Shown here: piece by piece, positions 8,655-61,663 of the stretch
Numbering within the stretch: position 1 is the first letter of the stretch
How the letters are laid out: each line of letters starts with the position of its first letter
Virus record (IMG/VR): IMGVR_UViG_3300023174_000036
Coordinates: 292,313-356,312 of that record
DNA length: 64,000 nt
Direction: 5' to 3' (one strand)
Position numbers and translations under genes: made by a program
Notes under the pieces: generated by a model
What the model saw: only the letters and a program-made list of their open reading frames with translations
Database searches by the model: none
Told to the model about the DNA's origin: nothing

Positions 8655-9755
8655 TTATAATTCTGGTAATGCATCATACTCTAATGTCTCGCTCATTACA
8701 CCTAGTACGTAGTTAGTACTTTCGTTTTCTTGTAATGCAGTTTGTTTCTTGCTGGTATCACTGTGTTTGTTGAACCAAGGAATTGGTGTTGACTTTGGAG
8801 CACTTGATTGATATTTGATCCCAATTTGTTTAAGCGCATCAACTGCTGTGTAGTCCACAAAGTCACGAAGGATGTTTGCATTGAGTCCAATGACTGGCCC
8901 CATCTTGAACAGATAACTGGCCCAATCTTTTTCTTCACGAATCACATCCATGTACAGTGCGTAGACTTCTGCTTCACATTCTGTTTTGGCTTCAACAAAG
9001 CGTGGATCTTCTTTGACTACTTGATTGATCAAATACGCAGTCCAACCTTTGTGCAACAGTTCGTCTTGCAAGATCAAACTGATAATATTACCATTGCCAA
9101 TAAAGATTTTATTCTCAACCATGGCCAAACTAGTGGCAAACGATGTCATAAATCGAAACGCTTCCAAAGCATAGCTGGCATGCAATGCCATCCAAATGGC
9201 TCGAATATGTTCTTTCTCTGTGACTTCCATACCAAGTTCTTTACGACAATTAATTTGATGTAATGCATCGTAGTAATTACCCACACTACTAGCCATGTCA
9301 ATAATTTCTTTAGTGTCGTGGATTGTGTTGAACACATCCTTAGGCACGTTGTAAATGTTACGGATAATATGACTATAACTTTTGCTGTGAATATTGGTTT
9401 CAAAAAATCCCCAGTTGTACATCAATGCCTCAACTTCAGGCAAGCTACACACTGGTGTGAACACTTGTGTTGGCCCACGGCCTTGCAAACTATCCAACGC
9501 TGTTTGACGTAACAAGTTGCTGGTAAAAATATGTTTCACAGCATCACTTGCTTCTTTGAAGTCGTTTGAATCTTTGGTAAGACTTACTTCTTCCGGTTGC
9601 CAAAAGAAGCCACGTGCAGTAGCATCAAAGTCTGCAATCTTTTTGTATTTGACTTCTTCAAAGCGTTGGATAGTCACCGGACCTGCTGGATCCAGAAACA
9701 TCTTACGGCTTAGGTAGTCTGTTTTTGTTGTTAAGTTATATTGTGCGGTGCTCAT
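8655..9755 (-). CDS. nrdB: class Ia ribonucleotide reductase beta subunit
   Basis: FFWQPEEV, QTALDSLQGR, IHSKSY, LEAFRF, QDELLH, ALQENESTNY; start at the TAATG overlap, 9755. Confidence 0.95.
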   Translation of the reverse strand: MSTAQYNLTTKTDYLSRKMFLDPAGPVTIQRFEEVKYKKIADFDATARGFFWQPEEVSLTKDSNDFKEASDAVKHIFTSNLLRQTALDSLQGRGPTQVFTPVCSLPEVEALMYNWGFFETNIHSKSYSHIIRNIYNVPKDVFNTIHDTKEIIDMASSVGNYYDALHQINCRKELGMEVTEKEHIRAIWMALHASYALEAFRFMTSFATSLAMVENKIFIGNGNIISLILQDELLHKGWTAYLINQVVKEDPRFVEAKTECEAEVYALYMDVIREEKDWASYLFKMGPVIGLNANILRDFVDYTAVDALKQIGIKYQSSAPKSTPIPWFNKHSDTSKKQTALQENESTNYVLGVMSETLEYDALPEL

Positions 9756-10411
9756 TAATATTTTCCTGATGCAAGTACTATCTTGCAAATATGTTCTAAT
9801 CTTTCTATGTGCTCATATGCACGCCAAGGACTAGTGTCAATAGCAACAACTCCGTGTCCTTTGATGCCTACAATGTCATAGGCAATGTTTCCCATCTTGT
9901 CTAATTGTAACATCTTATGACACTGATCCGCAAGCTCTTGACTGATAGGAGGTACATCTCCCACATTGGGTGCAACCTTGGTATAACGATTCAATTCTGG
10001 AAACGCATCGCTAATAGTGCTGAGATCGATACCGGCATGCATTGCGGCAATACAGTAAGTAGGATGAACATGTACTACTACTCGAACTTCTCCACTGTGC
10101 TGGCCCATTTCTTTTTGTAAGCCAAAATGTAATGGAATCTCACCGCTGGGTACTAGATTTTTACTGATATCGGTATACGGCAAATCTCTCCAACTATAAC
10201 CAAAGATGCCTGTGCCGTTGCCACTATTGATAGTTCTATCAATTGCAATTTTTTTGAACTGATCAGGTTGTAGAGTTTGTTTACGTACACCGCTTGGTGT
10301 AATGTAAAAGTGATCACGGTCGTGATGACGAATACTCACGTTACCATCACGACTGGTAATCCAGTTACGCTTGTAAGCGTCTACCATTATGTCACATATT
10401 GTTTCTAACAT
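9755..10411 (-). CDS. class II aldolase/adducin family protein
   Basis: DGNVS, ITPSG, PSGEIPLH, VVHVHP, GHGVVA. Confidence 0.88.
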   Translation of the reverse strand: MLETICDIMVDAYKRNWITSRDGNVSIRHHDRDHFYITPSGVRKQTLQPDQFKKIAIDRTINSGNGTGIFGYSWRDLPYTDISKNLVPSGEIPLHFGLQKEMGQHSGEVRVVVHVHPTYCIAAMHAGIDLSTISDAFPELNRYTKVAPNVGDVPPISQELADQCHKMLQLDKMGNIAYDIVGIKGHGVVAIDTSPWRAYEHIERLEHICKIVLASGKY

Positions 10412-12732
10412 TACAGTTTACAAGACTCGCAGTCTTCCTCGCTATCAAAATCTATTGGCTCCAGCATTGTAGGAGCTTCTTCTGCTTTCATCTTACTGCC
10501 TGCTTTGTTAATCAAACTATAGTAAAATGTTTTTAAACCCCACATGTGTGCTTGCATCAAATTCTTAGCAATCAATGTGGTTGGCACTTTGCGATCTGCA
10601 AAATGTGCTGGATTATAGAATGTGTTGGTGCTGATACTTTGATCCACATATGCCGCAAGCACTGCACTGGTTTTCAAATAACCGTCACAGTCTTTTTGAT
10701 CCCACATCATTTGATACTTGTTCTTGAGTTTGTGATATTCTGGTACCACTTGCACAAACGATCCTGCTTTGGATTCTTTCACACTGATCAAGCTCATTGG
10801 CATTTCGATACCGTTAGTACTGTTGATAACAACGCTTGAACTTTCTACCGGAGCGATAGCCATCAGTGTAGCATTGCGAACACCGTACTGTTTCATATTG
10901 ACTCGTAGGGTTTCCCAATCTAGTTCTGGGGTAAAGTCAGCTAGTTCATTTACACCGTTGGCTCGTAACTCCCACGGAAACGTACCCTGGCCGTATCGTG
11001 TGTGTGAGCTATGCTGACAAGCACCACGCTCTCGGGCCAACTCAACTGTTGCTTCCGTTAAGTAAAACGCTTGATGTTCCATCCATGCTTTAACGTCTTG
11101 TAATGCATCTTTTTCGCCGTAGCGTAACCCACGCTTGGCATGCCAGTAGGCAAGGTTAGTAACACCAATGCCCAATGGTTGTATTTCATCATTGCTTAAC
11201 TTAGACTGGATAGATAAGAAGTCTTGGTAATCAAGTATGTTGCATAGACTACGCTGTAAAATGCGGCAAGCACGGCGCATGTCTTCTGGATTACGGAATG
11301 CTCCCCAGTTGATCGAGCCGAGTGTGCAAAGAGCAATGCGGCCATCAGCATCATCAAGACGCTTGAAAGATTTAGTAGGTAATAGTATTTCACAGCATAA
11401 GTTACTTTGGTAAATTGTATGATACTCTGGGTCGAATGGTCCTTGTTTCATTACATTGTCAATAAACACAAGATAGATACGTCCTGTATCAGTGCGCTCT
11501 TTCAGTATGCCCGACTTGAACACTTCTTCGGCTGACATTGTTTTCTTGCGAAAACCTTTTTGTTTTTCATATTTTACGTACAATTCTTCAAACAGTTGTG
11601 TATTTGCATAAAAGGCTTCGTACAAGTCAGGTACTTCATTGGGGTCAAAGAATGTTATGTCTTCTTTGTTTTTAAATCGTCTCCAGAAGAAAGCACTAAG
11701 CACAACCCCATAATCCATATGACGGACTCGGGTTTCTTCTGTTCCTTGGTTGTTTTTAAGAACAATAAGATCATCAAACTGATGATGCCAAATAGGATAG
11801 AATACAGTAGCACTTGCATTGCGAATACCTCCTTGTGAACATGATCGCAAATCACCAAACCATTTCTTCAAGAAAGGTATCATACCAGTGTGCATGATTT
11901 CGCCGCCGCGAATCGGGGAGCCCAATGGGCGTAAGCGACCGATTTCCAATCCGATCCCCGCACGTTTACTGGCATACTTGGCCATCATTTCGCCTGACGC
12001 GAAAATACTGTCCAAATCATCATCCGAGCGAATAAGAACGCAACTACTAAATTGCTTAGTAGGCGTACCAAGCCCTGCCAACACTGGCGTGGCCAATGTA
12101 AATAGTCCGTCACTTGCGGCATTGTAATACTCCTTAATGTAACGCATACGAGCTGTATTAGGCTCTTCTTTGTGAAAGATTGTTGCTGATGCAATCATGT
12201 ACCTAATTTGTGGAGTTTCGTAAGTTTGTTTAGTACTGCGGTTTTTAACAAGATACTTTTCAATCAATTGTTCAATGGCCGCATACGAATATGTTTCGTC
12301 CTTTTCGTGATCCAACATATCGTCCATTCGATTCCAATCTTCTTCGGTATACCATTCCAGAAGTTCACTGGTATACAAACCAGTTGCTACATTTTTCTGC
12401 ACAATGGAATATAAACTGGGAACTTCATAATGACCATACACATCTTTGCGTAGCATACTCAGTCGTTGTTTGCCTGCCACATATTGATAATTAGTGTGAC
12501 CAACATCTGGATTATTTTCTACATCAATAAGGTCTACTATAGCACGGAGTGTTATACCATCAATTTCTTCTGTAGTGATTCCATCATAGAAGTGAGGCTG
12601 TGCTTTGATTTCTATCATACTCTGACTGACGTCAGCTATACCTTTACAGACTTTGGCCACCTGCGCTTGCCATTTTTCAATGGTCAACGGTTCTTTTTCA
12701 CCGTTTCTTTTTATTACTGTAATTTTATTCAT
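10411..12732 (-). CDS. nrdA: class Ia ribonucleotide reductase alpha subunit
   Basis: ATP cone VIKRNG, QFSSC, SNLCCEI, APVESSS, KTFYY, C-terminal CESC. Confidence 0.97.
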   Translation of the reverse strand: MNKITVIKRNGEKEPLTIEKWQAQVAKVCKGIADVSQSMIEIKAQPHFYDGITTEEIDGITLRAIVDLIDVENNPDVGHTNYQYVAGKQRLSMLRKDVYGHYEVPSLYSIVQKNVATGLYTSELLEWYTEEDWNRMDDMLDHEKDETYSYAAIEQLIEKYLVKNRSTKQTYETPQIRYMIASATIFHKEEPNTARMRYIKEYYNAASDGLFTLATPVLAGLGTPTKQFSSCVLIRSDDDLDSIFASGEMMAKYASKRAGIGLEIGRLRPLGSPIRGGEIMHTGMIPFLKKWFGDLRSCSQGGIRNASATVFYPIWHHQFDDLIVLKNNQGTEETRVRHMDYGVVLSAFFWRRFKNKEDITFFDPNEVPDLYEAFYANTQLFEELYVKYEKQKGFRKKTMSAEEVFKSGILKERTDTGRIYLVFIDNVMKQGPFDPEYHTIYQSNLCCEILLPTKSFKRLDDADGRIALCTLGSINWGAFRNPEDMRRACRILQRSLCNILDYQDFLSIQSKLSNDEIQPLGIGVTNLAYWHAKRGLRYGEKDALQDVKAWMEHQAFYLTEATVELARERGACQHSSHTRYGQGTFPWELRANGVNELADFTPELDWETLRVNMKQYGVRNATLMAIAPVESSSVVINSTNGIEMPMSLISVKESKAGSFVQVVPEYHKLKNKYQMMWDQKDCDGYLKTSAVLAAYVDQSISTNTFYNPAHFADRKVPTTLIAKNLMQAHMWGLKTFYYSLINKAGSKMKAEEAPTMLEPIDFDSEEDCESCKL

Positions 12733-52323: not shown

Positions 52324-53136
52324 ATGAAAAAATTATTACTATCGATCCTTATCTGTTACAGCACAGCGGCACACGCAGGTGGTGCTTATGCATTGTATGA
52401 TTACGATCAGCACGAATATCAAGTGTCGTTCAACACTTACGAAGTACGCCCCATTGCCAGTATTACCAAACTGTTCACTGCTGTCACTATATTGCGTAGC
52501 GGTGTGGAACTAACGGAAAAAGTCCGAGTAAAAGGTAAGAGTGGAGGTCGTTTCCCCAACGGTATGATGGTATCTCGCCATGATCTAATGAAGGCCATGA
52601 TGATCAGCAGTGATAATAGAGCAGCCGAAACTTTGGCCAATACTTATCCAGGTGGCTTTGACCAGTTCATCAAAGATGCAAACACCTACATAAAAGGTCG
52701 TGGTTTAATAAACACCAGCATTGAAGAGCCCACGGGTCTAAGTAAGAACAATGTAAGCACAGCAACTGAACTAATCAGTTTTATTGGTGCAATTAAAGAC
52801 AACGAAGCACTGAAATCATATTCAGACGAAAAAACTGCTGACATATTGATACCACGAGGTAAAAAGCAAGTGCATATCAAATTGCACAACACCAACCCCA
52901 GCATCTTTAAGTTTGACAACATATTGATCAGCAAGACCGGTTACACTGATCCAGCAGGCCGTTGTGTGGTCATGCTGGTTGAAAAGGGTAAGAAGTATTA
53001 TGGCATTGTGGTATTGGGACAGAAGAATGTTAATGAACGTAGTGAATTGGCCAACGGGTTGATTACCAAACCACCTTTGCCTTCCAAACCCGTTTCAAAA
53101 GAAGTTGATCCTATTGTGTTTGATTTGGCTATGTAA
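52324..53136 (+). CDS. peptidase S11 D-Ala-D-Ala carboxy/endopeptidase (PBP7/DacA-like)
   Basis: Signal peptide; ASITK, SDN, KTG; PTGL..NVSTA. Confidence 0.9.
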   Translation: MKKLLLSILICYSTAAHAGGAYALYDYDQHEYQVSFNTYEVRPIASITKLFTAVTILRSGVELTEKVRVKGKSGGRFPNGMMVSRHDLMKAMMISSDNRAAETLANTYPGGFDQFIKDANTYIKGRGLINTSIEEPTGLSKNNVSTATELISFIGAIKDNEALKSYSDEKTADILIPRGKKQVHIKLHNTNPSIFKFDNILISKTGYTDPAGRCVVMLVEKGKKYYGIVVLGQKNVNERSELANGLITKPPLPSKPVSKEVDPIVFDLAM

Positions 53137-55443
53137 TGGCGATAATAACCAAAACTAACTCGGGTTTTATGGCAGAACCAAAAGATATCGAAACCCACGA
53201 TGTTATGGTGTTTGGTGACCAGGCCTACAAAATTCACACTGTGGTTGTACACCGTTTTCGAATGGGCGATGTGGAAGATCCAGACTTGTATGCCGCTGAA
53301 CCGTTGTACCAATGGCAACAAAGTGAAATGGGACAATGGGTCATGTCTCGTGCGGTAGACACTCCGGAATGGCATAGACAAATGGATCAAATGCAATACC
53401 ATATGCAATATGCTGTTGTAGCCAAACTCAAAGATATCGATTATACCTTTTGGACTCTCAAATGGGGAAATGACGTTGACAAGCAGGAGTAAAGCTGTTA
53501 TAATTACTGTACGATAAACTAGCAGTAAACAGCAATGAAAAAAATCTACTACGAAAAGATTGGACGCAAATATGTGCCAGTTAGTGAGTACGATAACGAC
53601 TTTCTGGACAGCTTTACCCGAGGCACTCATTTGGTTATGAGCTACCCCGGAGGCTCAAGCCGCCGCTACAACATTGATCCTAACTATGCCGCTATGATAG
53701 CCGCTGGTCGTGTGGCTGAAGATGCTATTTGCAAGGCTATTAGTAAGGCCAGCGAACTACGTCCCAAACAAACTCCCATTACCCCAGGCCAGAAGCGAGC
53801 ATGGGAACGATTAGCCAAAGAGTTTGGTGACGATCTTTGCACACTGAATGGACTCAGTGTTCATGACTGTGCAGAAGCAGGTGTAAAGGCTATGATGTTG
53901 GAAGCAGATAAACTCATGGCCAATCCCATTGTTCGTAAAGCCTACGAACGTTTCCTTTTTGTTGCTGAACTAACGAAAGAACACAATGAGCAAAGCAAAA
54001 CATAAACCATATCAATGGATTGATGGAGAGACTGCTGATCGCATTACCAGTCTTAACCTAAAAGACTATCGTGCATATCTCAAAAAAGAATTAAAACAAT
54101 GGAAGAAGAATCCCAAGAGTGATTCAAACCCTGACGGTTATTGGCTACATCCAGAAGATGTGGGCCTGAATGTACAAACCATTGCGGCATTAGATTTGAT
54201 TATTAGTCATTTTGTAGTAACGGAGGATGAACATGAGTGAACAAGTATTATGCAAGGATTGCAAGCACAGTTTTAGGAAACTATCAGAGTTTCCGCAATG
54301 GGGCACTGGAATTGAATTGCGGTGTCGTTTAAACTATATTGAAAATGAAGTTGTAGAAAATCGCGTAACAGGCAATACTGTCAGGCCGCCTTACTATGAA
54401 CGATGTTCACTTACTCGAATGGATTATCTGAGCAAGGATCGTAATGAAACCTGCGGTAAAGATGGCAAATGGTGGACTCCTCAAAATAAAAAGGACTTGT
54501 TTAAGTTTATTAAACATGTAAGTGTATGAGTGGTTGGAACACAATTCAAAGAATTCGAAATCTTGAAGAGAAAATCGATCTCCTTGGCTTCAAGTTCAGC
54601 AAAAGCAAGCACGGTGATTGGACAGACAGTCACGGTGCCTTAAGCCTTGTGCCAAAAGATGCAGATGCACTACCAATGTACAGCCGCGATGCGGAACTGT
54701 TCGTGGGCAGTATTGAACGATTGGAAGATTGGCTTGCTGGAGTACAGTGGGCACGTGACTACGACCGCATGTGTAAGATCAGCACGGATAAGACTCGTGC
54801 GGCCGCAGAACAAAAGGAACGCAACAGGCAACTGATGCGCACATTAAAAGAAGGTAAGAGAATTGAAGGAGTAGTGGAATGACATTGGATTCAGCAAGTA
54901 ACTTTTTGGCCTGTACTATATTGGTGTGTTTGGGAATTGCCTGTTTGGCAGTACTCGTAGTGTTCTTAAATAACCTGTTTCATAGGTACTGGAACCCAAT
55001 AACTTGGAACCTTTATAGCTTTTTGGGCACAAAACACTATGATTTCCCGCATGATGCATTAAATAATACTACCAATCAAAAGGATCAAAATGGAAAATCT
55101 ATTTGAACTACTAATTGCAGGCGCAGTGGGCTATTACATAGGCTCTTGGGTTAAAGAACAGATCATGCTGGTACGCATGGTTCGCAATGCCAAAGACATT
55201 ATCAAGTATTTGGAACATGCCCAAAAGGTACTTGAAGAAGTGGAAGTTGAAGGCCTGCCTGAAGATGCTATCGAAGTTGAAGTTGAGCGGGTCAATGGAT
55301 TTGTCTACGCTTACAACAAAATGACTGGCGAATTTTTGGCACAGGCACAGAGTCTACACCAAGTAATGACCTTGGCGGCCAAACGATATCCTGGCAAGAA
55401 GTTTTGGCATCCTGAACTCACTGAAGATAGCCGAACAGCTTGA
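53136..55443 (+). CDS. run of hypothetical genes (53136-53492, 53535-54005, 53986-54240, 54233-54529, 54526-54882, 54879-55106, 55090-55443)
   Basis: Coupled ORFs; sigma70 promoter TTGACA(53476)-17-TATAAT(53499). Confidence 0.65.
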
Positions 55444-55513
55444 GTTTCATCTTTACCTGTAGTATACTAAGTCTAACTAGTGGATACTAGTAAAACTTAA
55501 AAGAGGAAATATT

Positions 55514-55786
55514 ATGAAATTCATTTCAAAAGAAACTAAGACCTACAAATTGTTCAATGCATTGTACAATGGTGAAAAAGTAACTGGTGCTCAAGCTGAA
55601 AAGCGTTTTGGCATCAAGAACATTGCTGCCGAAGCAAGCCGTATTCGTCAATCAGGTTATGCTGTTTACAGCCGTAGCCGTGTGGCTGGTAACGGTGTTA
55701 CTGTTACTGAATACGAAATGGGCAATGCCAGCCGCGAAATTATCGCACTTGGCTACAAAGCCAAAGCAATGGGCATCACACTTTAA
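55514..55786 (+). CDS. winged-HTH DNA-binding protein
   Basis: VTGAQAEKRFGIKNIAAEASRIRQSGYAVY; high-expression codon usage; terminator at 55807-55830. Confidence 0.7.
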   Translation: MKFISKETKTYKLFNALYNGEKVTGAQAEKRFGIKNIAAEASRIRQSGYAVYSRSRVAGNGVTVTEYEMGNASREIIALGYKAKAMGITL

Positions 55787-55861
55787 TTTTTAAAGTGCAA
55801 TCCGAAAGCTCGCTTAGGCGGGCTTTTTTATTGACTAAATATTTGTCAGGAGGACTCAACC

Positions 55862-56020
55862 ATGAAACAGAAAAAACTTTTAGTTAAACTGTACAGGGCT
55901 TGCGTCGACCATGATACAGAAACGGTTTCCGAACTGCGTAAAAAAGAGTTCGCTAAGATACTGAAACACAAGGCCGAAGGCAAACCATTTACAACAAAAT
56001 GGACGCTGGTGCAAATTTAA
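55862..56020 (+). CDS. 52-aa basic protein (not in ORF track)
   Basis: AGGAGG SD; [14 protein letters not shown]... Confidence 0.6.
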
Positions 56021-56064
56021 CACAACTGTAACATTACACACCCGATACTACGATAAATATTGCT

Positions 56065-56949
56065 ATGCAAAAAACTTATCGTAGTATTTTTGTGAGTGAC
56101 GTCCACTTGGGTACAAGAGACTGCAAGGCGGAACAACTCAATAATTTCCTCAAACACAATTCATGTGATACTCTCTACCTCGTTGGTGATATCATCGATG
56201 CTTGGAAAATACAACAAAACAAATGGCGTTGGAAACAAAGTCATACCAATGTGGTACGCAGAGTACTGGGTCATGCCAAACGCGGAACCCGTGTGGTATT
56301 CATAGCTGGTAATCACGATGAATTTCTGCGTCCCATGATACCATATGGATTCTCGTTTGGGCTTGTTGAAATACACAATCAAATAGAACACATAGGTGCA
56401 GACGGCAAGCATTATCTAGTCACACATGGTGACTTGTTTGACGGCATAACAAGATTGGCGCCTTGGATAAGTTTTTTAGGAGACAAAGCATATGATATCA
56501 TTTTATCGCTTAATAGCAAATTCAATTGGCTACGTCATCGTCTTGGTTTTGGGTACTTTAGTCTTAGTCAATATCTCAAACATAGAGTAAAACGTGCTGT
56601 GGACTTTATGTTCAAGTTTGAGGAAAATCTTGCCAACTACTGTAAAAAGCGTGGCTTTGACGGAGTAATATGTGGACACATACATCACGCAGAGATCAAA
56701 GAGATCAATGGTGTTGTGTACATGAATGATGGTGATTGGGTAGAATCATGCACAGCCCTAGTGGAACATTGGAACGGGCAGTGGGAGATAATTACTTGGA
56801 CACAGGAGAAGGATGATGTGGTTACTGATCCTAATAGCAGTACACGTGAACGATCCAACAGATCAGCCGGGAAGAGTGGAACTACAGTTCGCGGATCAAA
56901 AAACCTGCGAGCAGGCCCTAAGCACACTCAAGTGGCAACTAAAGTTTAA
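56065..56949 (+). CDS. LpxH-like metallophosphoesterase, PlcP (phospholipase C) type
   Basis: YRSIFVSDVHLG, LVGDIIDAW, GNHDEFLR, HGDLFD, LGDKAYD, GVICGHIHHA, NDGDWVESCTAL. Confidence 0.85.
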   Translation: MQKTYRSIFVSDVHLGTRDCKAEQLNNFLKHNSCDTLYLVGDIIDAWKIQQNKWRWKQSHTNVVRRVLGHAKRGTRVVFIAGNHDEFLRPMIPYGFSFGLVEIHNQIEHIGADGKHYLVTHGDLFDGITRLAPWISFLGDKAYDIILSLNSKFNWLRHRLGFGYFSLSQYLKHRVKRAVDFMFKFEENLANYCKKRGFDGVICGHIHHAEIKEINGVVYMNDGDWVESCTALVEHWNGQWEIITWTQEKDDVVTDPNSSTRERSNRSAGKSGTTVRGSKNLRAGPKHTQVATKV

Positions 56950-56992
56950 AAGTTTCAAGGTAGAAGGCAAATGTCTAAGACAATCCTCATAA
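56813..56992 (+). CDS. 59-aa overlapping protein (not in ORF track)
   Basis: GGAG SD; MMWLLILIAVHVNDPTDQPGRVELQFADQKTCEQAL...KCLRQSS. Confidence 0.6.
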   Translation: MMWLLILIAVHVNDPTDQPGRVELQFADQKTCEQALSTLKWQLKFKSFKVEGKCLRQSS

Positions 56993-57987
56993 TAACAGAC
57001 AATTTAAAGGATCAAATCAATGGCGTGGTTACCACCTACAAAAATATTGAGGCGTGTGCAACTCGTGACGGTTATAACGTTGTGGTGCTGGATCCCGGGT
57101 GGTTCAGCTACATTGATTGCCCTGGCTACAACGAAGTCAAGATTGCCTATCCCAGGAACTTGGGCAAGAAGATTGAGGAGATATCTCCGGATTATATCCA
57201 TATCGCCACAGAGGGTCCTCTTGGTCTGTGGGCTAGAGCATATCTTTCATTGGGTGATATTCGCCACAATACCGCTTATCATACTAAGTTTCCTGAAGGG
57301 TTGAAAAAGCTGTTTGGCATACCTGAAAGCCTAACGTGGCGTTTTGTACGTTGGTTCCACAAGCATTCAGGCAAGGTCTTGACCACAACACCCAGCATGG
57401 TTCGTGAACTCAAGTCGCATGGCTTTGGGGGTGAAGTTATACCCTGGACCCGTGGCGTGGATCGTGATATCTTTAACCCCAGCTATCGAGTCAAGACTGT
57501 GGTAAACGGTCCCGTATTGTTGTGTGTCAGCAGGGTCAGCAAGGAAAAGAATCTAGAAGCCTTCTTTGAATTGGACTACCCAGGTGCCAACAAGATCATG
57601 GTGGGCGATGGCCCCATGTTGGACACTTATCGAAAGGCCTACCCTGACGTCATGTTCACAGGCTTTAGGACTGGAGTGGACCTAGCACGTTACTATGCCA
57701 TGGCAGATGTGTTTGTGTTCCCCAGTCAGTGGGAAACGTTTGGCATTGTTATGATAGAAGCCATGGCCTGTGGCACACCTGTAGCCGCTTACCCATGCCA
57801 GGGTCCAGAGGATGTGATTGATGAGGGTGTAACTGGCTGTTTAAATGACGAGCTCAAGCAGGCTGTGAAAGATGCCTTAATGTTGAGCCGACAGCAGGTT
57901 TGGGAAGGCAGTGCCCGTTGGACTTGGCAAGAAGCGTGGCACATATTCCGTGACAATCTAGTGGAAATGAAATCGGGTACAAGATAA
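56971..57987 (+). CDS. GT4 glycosyltransferase (Agt-like glycolipid synthase)
   Basis: QINGVVTT, IHIATEGPLG, YHTKFPE, WTRGVD, RVSKEKN, ETFGIVMIEAMACG. Confidence 0.88.
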   Translation: MSKTILIITDNLKDQINGVVTTYKNIEACATRDGYNVVVLDPGWFSYIDCPGYNEVKIAYPRNLGKKIEEISPDYIHIATEGPLGLWARAYLSLGDIRHNTAYHTKFPEGLKKLFGIPESLTWRFVRWFHKHSGKVLTTTPSMVRELKSHGFGGEVIPWTRGVDRDIFNPSYRVKTVVNGPVLLCVSRVSKEKNLEAFFELDYPGANKIMVGDGPMLDTYRKAYPDVMFTGFRTGVDLARYYAMADVFVFPSQWETFGIVMIEAMACGTPVAAYPCQGPEDVIDEGVTGCLNDELKQAVKDALMLSRQQVWEGSARWTWQEAWHIFRDNLVEMKSGTR

Positions 57988-58088
57988 GGTATCGCTGGAA
58001 TTCGTAACCAGCACTAAAGGGCCCCGGCTCTTTTTTTATGGCTATTCACTTCTTGCATACGCCACAAGGCGGCCTGTATAATTACAGT

Positions 58089-58764
58089 ATGCTTGATAAT
58101 ATATTTAAACCCACCCTGGATTGGATACGCGATGACTACACCAGTAATAGAATACGTTTTTGTCTTGAGAGCCTTGCTTGGGCTATCTCTATTGGTTGTA
58201 GTATCACTATGGCCACAACTGTGCCCACACCTCCCTTACTTGTCTTGTACCCAATTTGGATTACAGGTTGTGCTATATACGCTTGGTGCGCTTTTAGTCG
58301 GCGTTCCTTTGGTATGTTGGCTAATTATGTGCTTCTTACCACAATCGACACTGTGGGATTGATAAGGATGCTATGATAACAGATGCCGAACTAGACACCC
58401 TGATAAACCAATTGGATGCTGTGTTGTTACAGTATAACCATTGCCCAGCCCATGAAGTAGCGGGCGCATTACTCAGCAGAATAACCTTGTTAATGACCAT
58501 GGATCCCTCAGTGGGCAAGCACATGCTGAAGTTTGTGTGGGAGAAACTGGACGAAATTGAACAAGCCAATCCGGGAGGTATGATATGATTGATATGAAAC
58601 TCAGCAAGTACTGGGTGGGCTCAAACCATCATGAATTTGAACTGATGGCAGTGTACACAGAGTCGGATACCAAATGGGCACGTTATAGAGACATCTTGAA
58701 CGACAAAGAGTACAACTGTAGACTTGAAGCGTTTTTGGCGAGATTCAGCCCCAGCGTAGATTAA
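58089..58764 (+). CDS. three small genes (58089-58376 membrane protein; 58373-58588; 58585-58764)
   Basis: ATGA-coupled ORFs. Confidence 0.6.
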
Positions 58765-60958: not shown

Positions 60959-61663
60959 ATGTTTAAATTGCTTTCAACGGCGAACCCCAAAATCCAAAAA
61001 GGAACGAAACTTGGATACCTATCATTCATCTTACACCTTGCCCCAGCTGATCTCAGCGGACGCGAGACCTGCCCTAAGCGTACTCCAGGCTGTACCGCCG
61101 CTTGCCTTAACACTGCCGGTCGCGGTGGCATGTTCAAGCGTGGGGAATCCACTAACACGATCCAGCGGGCACGTATACGTAAGACCAACGAGTTCTTCAA
61201 TAATCGCGAACAGTTCATGTTCGACTTATACCACGATATAGTCAAAGCCAAGAAGTTCGCTGACAAGCAGGGTTTGATTCCAGTGTTTCGTTTGAATGGC
61301 ACTAGCGATTTGAGCTGGGAGAAGTACACCGTAGGCACTACGGACATGAACTTGTTTCAATTGTTCCCCACTACCCAGTTCTATGACTACACTAAGATCT
61401 TGGGCCGTAAGGTTAGCCAATACCCCAACTACCACTTGACGTTCAGCAAGGCAGACGGCAATGACGCTGATGTTGCAGAAGCATTAATGCAGGGTATGTC
61501 AGTGGTTGCGGTATACGATGCTATCCCAGAGGGTGTTCCGTCAGCTGATGAAACAGACTTGCGCTTCTTAGACCCTAAGGGCATTATGCTTGGTTTGAAG
61601 GCTAAGGGTCGTGCTAAGAAGGACTACAGTGGGTTCGTAATCCGTTTGAAGGAGGTTGCATAA
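60959..61663 (+). CDS. Gp88-like protein (radical-SAM-like Cys motif)
   Basis: CPKRTPGCTAACL..AGRG, FRLNGTSD, FYDYTK, NYHLTFS, DLRFLD. Confidence 0.8.
   Translation: MFKLLSTANPKIQKGTKLGYLSFILHLAPADLSGRETCPKRTPGCTAACLNTAGRGGMFKRGESTNTIQRARIRKTNEFFNNREQFMFDLYHDIVKAKKFADKQGLIPVFRLNGTSDLSWEKYTVGTTDMNLFQLFPTTQFYDYTKILGRKVSQYPNYHLTFSKADGNDADVAEALMQGMSVVAVYDAIPEGVPSADETDLRFLDPKGIMLGLKAKGRAKKDYSGFVIRLKEVA

Follow-up and report, generated by a model that had tools for sequence, protein, structure and literature searches.

Proteobacteria replace phosphorus-containing membrane lipids with sugar lipids by a two-gene pathway, in which the phospholipase C PlcP (also called LpxH2; Sinorhizobium meliloti SMc00171, Phaeobacter MED193_17359, Pseudomonas aeruginosa PA3219) is encoded together with a gene for phosphorus-free lipid synthesis, such as agt, another glycosyltransferase, or btaAB, and the plcP-agt operon layout and the activities have been published (PMC4796936, PMC8528852). 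Described Agt/Agt1 proteins include Agrobacterium tumefaciens Atu2297, P. aeruginosa PA3218 and Agt of SAR11 HTCC7211, and PA3218 and PA0842 have been characterised by expression in E. coli with lipidomics (PMC8528852). LpxH, the UDP-2,3-diacylglucosamine diphosphatase of the lipid A pathway, shares the core fold and is the usual database label for proteins of the PlcP type. Marine T4-like phages carry other host phosphorus-stress functions (pstS, phoH, phoA), which import or signal phosphate, whereas a viral PlcP-Agt module would recycle an internal pool, the membrane lipids. No earlier report of a phage plcP-agt was found, and our literature searches returned no paper combining PlcP with phage-encoded or auxiliary metabolic genes.

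Gene content and boundaries of the cassette

The window analysed here is a stretch of 64,000 nucleotides (positions 292,313 to 356,312 of IMG/VR record IMGVR_UViG_3300023174_000036) from a 356-kb T4-type jumbo myovirus from lakes. The phage is uncultured, and no near-identical DNA was found in the phage collection searched. A preliminary description of the sequence had proposed a plcP-agt-like pair behind a TAAATA late promoter, and this observation was confirmed: two co-directional genes, A and B, are present, A contains LGDKAYD, GVICGHIHHA and NDGDWVESCTAL, and B contains NGVV, HIATEGPLG and YHTKFPE. The features of the locus are as follows.

55804-55832 (+): intrinsic-terminator-like hairpin plus U run, closing the upstream wHTH gene (55514-55786) and marking the 5' border of the cassette (10-bp stem, -14.6 kcal/mol, z -2.95, followed by UUUUUU; not listed by a consensus terminator scan).
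55862-56020 (+): small basic ORF of 52 aa with a good Shine-Dalgarno sequence (AGGAGG) and no Pfam hit; a homologue lies within about 250 nt upstream of A in roughly two dozen of 80 IMG/VR loci.
56052-56059 (+): GATAAATA, a T4-type late-promoter-like -10 element 5 nt before the ATG of A, with no Shine-Dalgarno sequence, so that the mRNA is predicted to be leaderless.
56065-56949 (+): gene A (294 aa), a PlcP/LpxH2-type metallophosphoesterase, predicted to be a phospholipase C that releases diacylglycerol; the conserved functional part is codons 1 to about 250 (56065 to about 56815).
56816-56992 (+): gene X, a conserved 58-aa protein in a different frame, overlapping the tail of A and the first 22 nt of B.
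56971-57987 (+): gene B (338 aa), an Agt-type GT4 (retaining GT-B fold), predicted to be a UDP-sugar:diacylglycerol glycosyltransferase.
58016-58040 (+): weak terminator-like hairpin followed by T7 at the 3' border, listed by the consensus scan but with a weak fold (-6.4 kcal/mol, z -0.35).

One correction to the annotation concerns gene X, which the preliminary description had missed. The last ~44 codons of the 294-aa A frame are not under selection in that frame, and functional A is therefore about 250 aa. The X frame is open and conserved in 46 of 80 viral loci, the codon-position diversity pattern fits this frame, and a Shine-Dalgarno sequence, GGAGAAGG, lies 5 nt upstream. X has a hydrophobic N-terminus and two invariant Cys. 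In contrast to the bacterial plcP loci, X is inserted between A and the glycosyltransferase gene. No Pfam, NCBIfam or PHROG family was recovered for X, and the Atlas gave only viral hypothetical clusters. A predicted complex of A (residues 1-255) with X scored 0.09, which is not evidence either way.

Family membership of the two enzymes

Protein A is recognised by Pfam as Metallophos (PF00149; 45 bits, cut-off 21.5) and carries the five blocks of calcineurin-like metallophosphoesterases (D12/H14, GD41-42, GNHD82-85, H121 and GHIH204-207), with all metal-binding residues invariant in the alignments. Whether A might instead be a true LpxH had been named beforehand as an alternative, and the evidence was consistently against it. 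A scores only 47 and 33.8 bits on the two LpxH equivalog models (NF003743 and TIGR01854), whose cut-offs are 134 and 190 bits, and is only 17-20% identical to LpxH. Gamma- and betaproteobacterial genomes with an A-like gene also possess a true LpxH scoring 282-340 bits, while their A-like paralogue scores 37-55 bits. Block 3 reads GNHD in A, GNHD or GNHE in 84 of 84 bacterial A-like proteins and in 5 of 5 phage copies (A and four others), and GNRD in 4 of 4 LpxH, which is the published difference between LpxH and LpxH2 (PMC3087551); the same paper cites that P. aeruginosa lpxH2 does not complement E. coli lpxH. In the tree, LpxH and the A-like clade split with 100 SH-aLRT, and phage A nests inside the A-like clade, which holds the PA3219-type gene of the P. 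aeruginosa group.

The link to characterised PlcP rests on genomes of the right genus, on synteny and on published identities. In 29 of 31 genomes of the genus of P. pseudonitroreducens there is one A-like gene, 52-55% identical to A; this is the 269-aa LpxH paralogue followed by a GT4, matching PA3219-PA3218. PA3219 is itself only 46-47% identical to the other characterised PlcPs (PMC8528852). The AF2 model of A has a core pLDDT above 90 with a helical insert at 123-195, and its 25 best PDB matches are all LpxH (E about 1e-10); no solved PlcP or Agt structure was found in the PDB, only LpxH and generic GT4s. The nearest bacterial branch in the tree lies on a 348-kb contig and was examined as a possible mis-binned jumbo phage, but its flanks share nothing with the phage genome.

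Protein B matches Glyco_transf_4 (PF13439) plus Glycos_transf_1 (PF00534), carries an EX7E motif at 255-263, and gives an AF2 model with a pLDDT of 91.7. Over its full length it is 37-45% identical to the GT4 immediately downstream of the A-like gene in 55 of the 80 best proteobacterial loci. In Pseudomonas genomes the best match of B is the plcP-adjacent GT4 (232-238 bits), while the next match scores 101-109 bits and other GT4s score below 52. In the tree B nests among plcP-adjacent GT4s, although the phage clade sits on a long branch of 1.62 substitutions per site. Most of its nearest reviewed structural matches act on diacylglycerol or glycolipids (MgtA, SQD2 and MGlcDAG synthases, TM 0.80-0.87), but the sugar specificity, glucose or glucuronic acid, cannot be read from the sequence.

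Distribution, selection and the upstream motif

At least 586 IMG/VR contigs encode a relative. In the best 80 of these, all 78 with enough downstream sequence have a glycosyltransferase within 1 kb downstream of A (76 directly abutting), either a GT4 (27) or a short, non-homologous GT2 (51), an alternative partner which the preliminary description did not include. The GT2 was not found next to plcP in the 80 bacterial loci, and NCBIfam gave only weak generic GT2 hits. In a second, more distant viral set, 57 of 69 loci have a downstream glycosyltransferase. The pair is under purifying selection in phages, with codon-position diversity of 0.118/0.063/0.446 for A and 0.235/0.150/0.438 for B. The sequence occurs in lake and freshwater metagenomes. 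Fragments covering A and B were present in four lake RNA libraries, although DNA carry-over cannot be excluded and most pieces come from diverged relatives.

The motif GATAAATA occurs 9 times in the window against 2.6 expected (0 of 100 shuffles reach 9), and ATAAATA-N5-ATG occurs 4 times against 0.40 expected (0 of 100). It resembles the T4-type late -10 element TATAAATA, it also stands before tail-fibre and virion genes, and the phage has a T4-type Gp23 capsid protein; on present evidence, which is from sequence alone, it is late-promoter-like. TAAATA-N3-7 directly before the in-frame ATG of A is present in 46 of 80 related phage loci and in 0 of 80 bacterial loci. The bacterial plcP genes are under PhoB control through an upstream Pho box, a regulatory feature of those genes and not of the enzyme; no match to CTGTCATNNNNCTGTCAT with up to 3 mismatches was found between 47,040 and the end of the window.

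Predicted function and alternative readings

The most likely explanation, to which we assign a probability of roughly 0.6, is a phage-borne version of the proteobacterial PlcP-Agt membrane lipid remodelling operon. In this view, A is a Mn/metal-dependent phosphoesterase predicted to cut the phospho-head group off host glycerophospholipids (PE, PG, PC) at the cytoplasmic face of the inner membrane, leaving diacylglycerol, and B is predicted to transfer glucose or glucuronic acid from a UDP-sugar onto that diacylglycerol, so that the bilayer is refilled with a phosphorus-free glycolipid. The Pho-box control region would be replaced by a late-type motif placed so that transcription should start at the AUG, and the pathway would therefore run on the timetable of the phage whatever the PhoB state of the host. 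The most likely benefit would be the release of lipid-bound phosphorus for the very large DNA demand of a 356-kb genome in phosphorus-poor lake water, with host enzymes completing the release of phosphate. Family membership, synteny, selection, the motif and the distribution in viruses are demonstrated by the present analysis, whereas the enzymatic activities, substrates, products, timing and phosphorus benefit are inferred.

The preliminary interpretation, that the phage mines host membrane phosphate for its DNA synthesis independently of PhoB while glycolipid keeps the membrane intact, was thus only partly supported: the enzyme assignment is well supported, but phosphate mining as the purpose is plausible and inferred. 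The lake habitat and the association of distant viral copies with pstS point to phosphorus: the copy of A in the cultured Pelagibacter phage Mosig is the divergent neighbour of pstS, and a PstS-like gene lies within 3 kb in 5 further viral loci. An E. coli-sized cell holds about 2x10^7 phospholipid P atoms, roughly 30 copies of a 356-kb dsDNA genome at 7.1x10^5 P each; for a jumbo phage this pool is of the same order as the phosphorus needed for a burst. However, PlcP releases phospho-alcohols and not phosphate, and no recognisable PhoA, PhoD or PstS was found in the phage genome, although phoH is present. Moreover, if the motif really is a late promoter, expression comes late for feeding replication. 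The commoner partner in related phages, a short GT2 of unknown specificity that was not found next to bacterial plcP, also weighs against the explanation.

A broader and tentative possibility is that lipid remodelling is a widespread, overlooked viral takeover function, by which many aquatic phages, both freshwater jumbo myoviruses and marine SAR11 myophages, force infected cells to convert phospholipid into glycolipid from a leaderless late transcript, whatever the phosphate sensing of the host, using a modular cassette of PlcP, an optional small protein X, and an interchangeable GT4 or GT2. The module is common, it is seen in many lake metagenomes, and a cultured SAR11 phage has a copy, but it is routinely mislabelled as lpxH or LPS biosynthesis, so that surveys of viral auxiliary metabolic genes misplace it. 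Since non-phosphorus lipids are used as markers of bacterial phosphorus stress, virus-driven remodelling would affect how those markers are read, and, if this broader reading holds, part of the glycolipid-to-phospholipid signal read in lakes and oceans as bacterial phosphorus stress would in fact report viral infection. The cassette is small and easy to test in E. coli or in plcP/agt mutants, and gene X and the predicted leaderless late-start layout are useful corrections to the annotation of this phage group.

Among the alternatives, the one that survives best, although it is less likely, retains the same enzymes but places the selected benefit in a changed membrane: blocking superinfection or adsorption of progeny to infected cells and debris, hardening the envelope through the long latent period of a jumbo phage, or tuning fluidity together with the phage desaturases. 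The phage encodes a DesA-family desaturase whose 5' end (GATAAATATTGC...ATG) is nearly identical to that of A (GATAAATATTGCATG versus GATAAATATTGCTATG), suggesting broader membrane tuning, plus a second, more distant desaturase homologue, and a desaturase lies 1-3 kb downstream of the cassette in at least 13 related contigs. The absence of a recognisable phosphatase or PstS in the phage fits this view, published work links lipid remodelling to antimicrobial resistance (PMC8528852), and a further paper, judging by its title, links lipids to phage attachment (PMC9938194). The pstS neighbourhoods and the habitat in lakes and oligotrophic sea argue for phosphorus instead, but the two motives do not exclude each other.

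It is very unlikely that A is a late-expressed lysis helper degrading the inner membrane at the end of infection, with a functionally unrelated glycosyltransferase acting, for example, on virion proteins or DNA. The late-type motif is shared with structural genes and T4-type phages glycosylate DNA, but the coupling of A to a glycosyltransferase in 78 of 78 viral contigs and 55 of 80 bacterial loci argues for one pathway, the closest relatives and folds of B act on lipids, and no holin, endolysin or spanin gene was recognised among the ten neighbouring ORFs scanned. Weakest is the reading of A as an LpxH-like UDP-2,3-diacylglucosamine hydrolase and of B as an LPS glycosyltransferase, altering the outer membrane or the phage receptor, which is favoured by database names, by the nearest solved fold and by a Lake Baikal viral transcript survey listing lpxH under LPS biosynthesis (PMC9611531) but is already largely refuted by the equivalog scores, the separate true LpxH in the same bacterial genomes, the GNHD block, the split of the two clades, the cited failure of P. 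aeruginosa lpxH2 to complement lpxH, and the grouping of B with plcP-linked diacylglycerol GT4s.

The cassette and the phage that carries it

The virus record has a length of 356,312 bp and an estimated completeness of 96%, and the window covers its last 64 kb. The preliminary description of two adjacent genes, a metallophosphoesterase (A) followed by a GT4 glycosyltransferase (B), held: two co-directional open reading frames were found, and every peptide motif attributed to them is present. A is a calcineurin-like metallophosphoesterase, whereas B contains the two GT4 domains PF13439 and PF00534. The features of the region are as follows.

55514-55786 (+), small winged-helix protein
55804-55832 (+), strong terminator-like hairpin (-14.6 kcal/mol, z -2.95), after which the cassette begins
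55862-56020 (+), basic 52-aa ORF directly upstream of A, with a good Shine-Dalgarno sequence (AGGAGG)
56052 (+), start of the late-promoter-like motif GATAAATA
56065-56949 (+), A, metallophosphoesterase, 294 aa
56816-56992 (+), X, conserved 58-aa gene in the +1 frame, overlapping the nominal tail of A and the first 22 nt of B
56971-57987 (+), B, GT4 glycosyltransferase, 338 aa
58016-58040 (+), weak hairpin plus T run, at which the cassette ends

The 52-aa ORF travels with the cassette in roughly two dozen related contigs and returned no family hit.

The phage genome (G000) encodes a T4-type Gp23 capsid protein that is 70-78% identical to those of the GAP32 / PA5oct / Serratia BF / Sinorhizobium Phosso group of jumbo myoviruses, all of which infect Proteobacteria; a proteobacterial host is likely. 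The window holds ribonucleotide reductase (RNR) subunits, tail fibres and baseplate genes, and DNA of the cassette was detected in many lake and freshwater metagenomes. None of the cultured jumbo relatives has an A homologue; in the phage collection searched, homologues were present only in Pelagibacter phage Mosig (49% identity), Synechococcus phage S-SRM01 (36%) and two metagenomic records.

Family placement of A and B

A belongs to the PlcP/LpxH2 branch and is not LpxH. It scored 47 and 33.8 bits against the two LpxH equivalog models, whose cut-offs are 134 and 190. In Pseudomonas, Chromobacterium, Cupriavidus and Pantoea genomes that carry an A-like gene, a separate true LpxH scored 282-340 bits and the A-like paralogue 37-55 bits, while Azospirillum has only the A-like gene. 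The two branches were defined by Opiyo et al. 2010 (PMC3087551): LpxH has Arg in block 3 (GNRD), whereas LpxH2, exemplified by the 270-aa P. aeruginosa and the 281-aa S. meliloti proteins, retains His, and the authors cite that P. aeruginosa lpxH2 does not complement E. coli lpxH. In our set, block 3 reads GNHD or GNHE in A, in 84 of 84 bacterial A-like proteins and in the other 4 phage copies, but GNRD in 4 of 4 LpxH. The placement relative to true LpxH, which had been set beforehand as a test of the assignment, was examined in a maximum-likelihood tree, where LpxH separated from the A-like clade with 100 SH-aLRT; A of the window grouped with two related huge-phage copies (100), sister to Mosig plus one MAG (97), inside the proteobacterial clade.

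A single A-like gene at 52-55% identity to A was found in 29 of 31 genomes of the genus of P. pseudonitroreducens. PA3219 has been shown to be the PlcP of P. aeruginosa and is 46-47% identical to the Phaeobacter and S. meliloti enzymes (Jones et al. 2021, PMC8528852), and phage A therefore lies well within the spread of the family. All metal ligands are invariant. The AF2 model has a confident core and a helical insertion at residues 123-195, and its 25 best PDB matches are all LpxH at 17-20% identity; no PlcP structure exists.

B is an Agt-type GT4. In 55 of the 80 proteobacterial loci found with A, a full-length GT4 that is 37-45% identical to B lies immediately downstream on the same strand. 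This plcP-agt layout has been described as the commonest neighbourhood of plcP (Sebastian et al. 2016, PMC4796936), and in P. aeruginosa it corresponds to PA3219-PA3218 (PMC8528852). In Pseudomonas genomes the best match of B is the plcP-adjacent GT4 (41-42% identity, 232-238 bits), followed by a second GT4, plausibly of the Agt2 type (101-109 bits), while the remainder scored below 52 bits. In the tree the phage B clade (100) is placed among plcP-adjacent GT4s. B carries an EX7E motif at 255-263 and gave a confident GT-B model (pLDDT 91.7), and most of its nearest reviewed structural matches act on diacylglycerol or glycolipids, namely MgtA, Arabidopsis SQD2 and the MGlcDAG synthases (TM 0.80-0.87), although the sequence does not reveal which sugar would be transferred.

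Distribution in viruses, the overlapping gene X and predicted control elements

At least 586 IMG/VR contigs encode a relative of A. Among the best 80 (loci L139-L218; 75-93% identity, contigs of up to 360 kb), 78 have enough downstream sequence, and all 78 have a glycosyltransferase within 1 kb downstream of A, directly abutting in 76. It is a B-like GT4 in 27 and a non-homologous, short GT2 of 238 aa in 51, so that in about two thirds of these contigs the GT2 replaces the GT4 at the same position after A. The GT2 of the related phage contig L002 (6907-7623) has TIGR04283 as its best NCBIfam hit, at 66.8 bits and far below the cut-off, and the GT2 was not found next to plcP in the bacterial loci examined. 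The cassette sits in different genomic neighbourhoods in related phages.

A second scan with the Mosig protein as the query identified further viral clades, in which 57 of 69 loci with room have a GT4 (43) or a GT2 (14) downstream. A PstS-like phosphate-binding protein gene lies within 3 kb of the viral plcP-like gene in 5 of these (L253, L263, L269, L297 and L298), and in Mosig itself pstS is the divergent neighbour (L005, 2894-3841). Both genes are under purifying selection in phages, with nucleotide diversity by codon position of 0.118/0.063/0.446 for A codons 1-250 and 0.235/0.150/0.438 for B. A DesA-family desaturase lies 1-3 kb downstream in at least 13 contigs. Two fatty-acid desaturase homologues were found in G000 outside the window, at 282012-282713 (+) and 275062-275736 (-) of the genome; the first is of the DesA family (its L002 homologue scores 394 bits against a cut-off of 400), and the second is more distant.

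In A codons 251-294 the diversity pattern flips to 0.455/0.311/0.180, which is the signature of selection in the +1 frame. Five homologues have stops in the A-frame tail, and the tail of the AF2 model is disordered. The +1 frame encodes X, which is preceded by a strong Shine-Dalgarno sequence (GGAGAAGG) and has a hydrophobic N-terminus and two invariant cysteines. X is open and conserved in 46 of 80 viral loci, with either glycosyltransferase type, and absent from the bacterial loci; searches for a family assignment returned none. Where X is missing, A ends at about 250 aa and the glycosyltransferase follows at once.

The motif GATAAATA lies 5 nt before the ATG of A, which has no Shine-Dalgarno sequence. 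The motif is enriched (9 observed against 2.6 expected) and stands before tail-fibre and other virion genes. Across G000, 16 of 75 ATAAATA sites are followed after 4-5 nt by an ATG that opens an ORF of 72-897 aa; sites of this leaderless-type layout include 56052, 39696, 28418, 8113, 30404 and 43052 in the window. One of the 16 precedes the DesA-family desaturase gene, whose 5' end (GATAAATATTGCATG) is almost identical to that of A. With T4 late-promoter geometry, transcription would start on the A of the ATG, giving a leaderless mRNA. TAAATA-N3-7 directly before the in-frame ATG precedes A in 46 of 80 related phage loci and in Mosig, but in 0 of 80 bacterial loci, and a search for a Pho box found none. 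The proposal in the preliminary description of a late promoter acting independently of PhoB is therefore plausible, as judged from sequence alone. Fragments of both genes occur in four lake metatranscriptome assemblies (window 55400-58400), although DNA carry-over cannot be excluded. One run has exact pieces over 55400-55910 and 55923-56204, the second of which spans GATAAATA; if it is RNA, this would mean read-through from upstream.

Predicted function and further genes of the window

Family membership, synteny, selection, the motif and the viral distribution are established by the present analysis, whereas the activities and their benefit to the phage are inferred. In this view, A would cleave host glycerophospholipids to diacylglycerol plus phospho-head groups, and B, or the GT2 in other phages, would cap the diacylglycerol with a sugar, so that the membrane stays intact while lipid phosphorus enters the soluble pool. 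The interpretation in the preliminary description is supported in part: the family assignment is supported, whereas the purpose, freeing membrane phosphate for phage DNA synthesis, is only inferred. We place the probability of the enzyme and pathway assignment at about 0.85 and, given that assignment, the probability that phosphorus recovery is the main benefit at roughly 0.6.

The phosphorus motive fits the habitat, the pstS neighbourhood and the arithmetic, since we estimate that the roughly 2x10^7 lipid P atoms of an E. coli-sized cell equal about 30 genomes of 356 kb. However, no PhoA, PhoD or PstS was found in the phage, so host enzymes would have to release the phosphate, and late timing is not ideal for feeding replication. 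Alternatively, the putatively co-regulated desaturase suggests that membrane properties themselves may be the target.

The enzymes are new members of known families; what differs from the known system is the viral context, the promoter swap, the inserted gene X and the interchangeable GT4 or GT2. Our literature searches found no paper describing a phage plcP-agt module, and phage records and a Lake Baikal viral transcript survey label it lpxH or LPS biosynthesis.

Elsewhere in the window, class Ia RNR small and large subunits (8655-12732, -) and a GP88-family protein (60959-61663, +) are encoded. In addition, a D-alanyl-D-alanine carboxypeptidase (52324-53136, +; Peptidase_S11, 115 bits) has an N-terminus that looks like a signal peptide, and could be a cell-wall remodelling gene.
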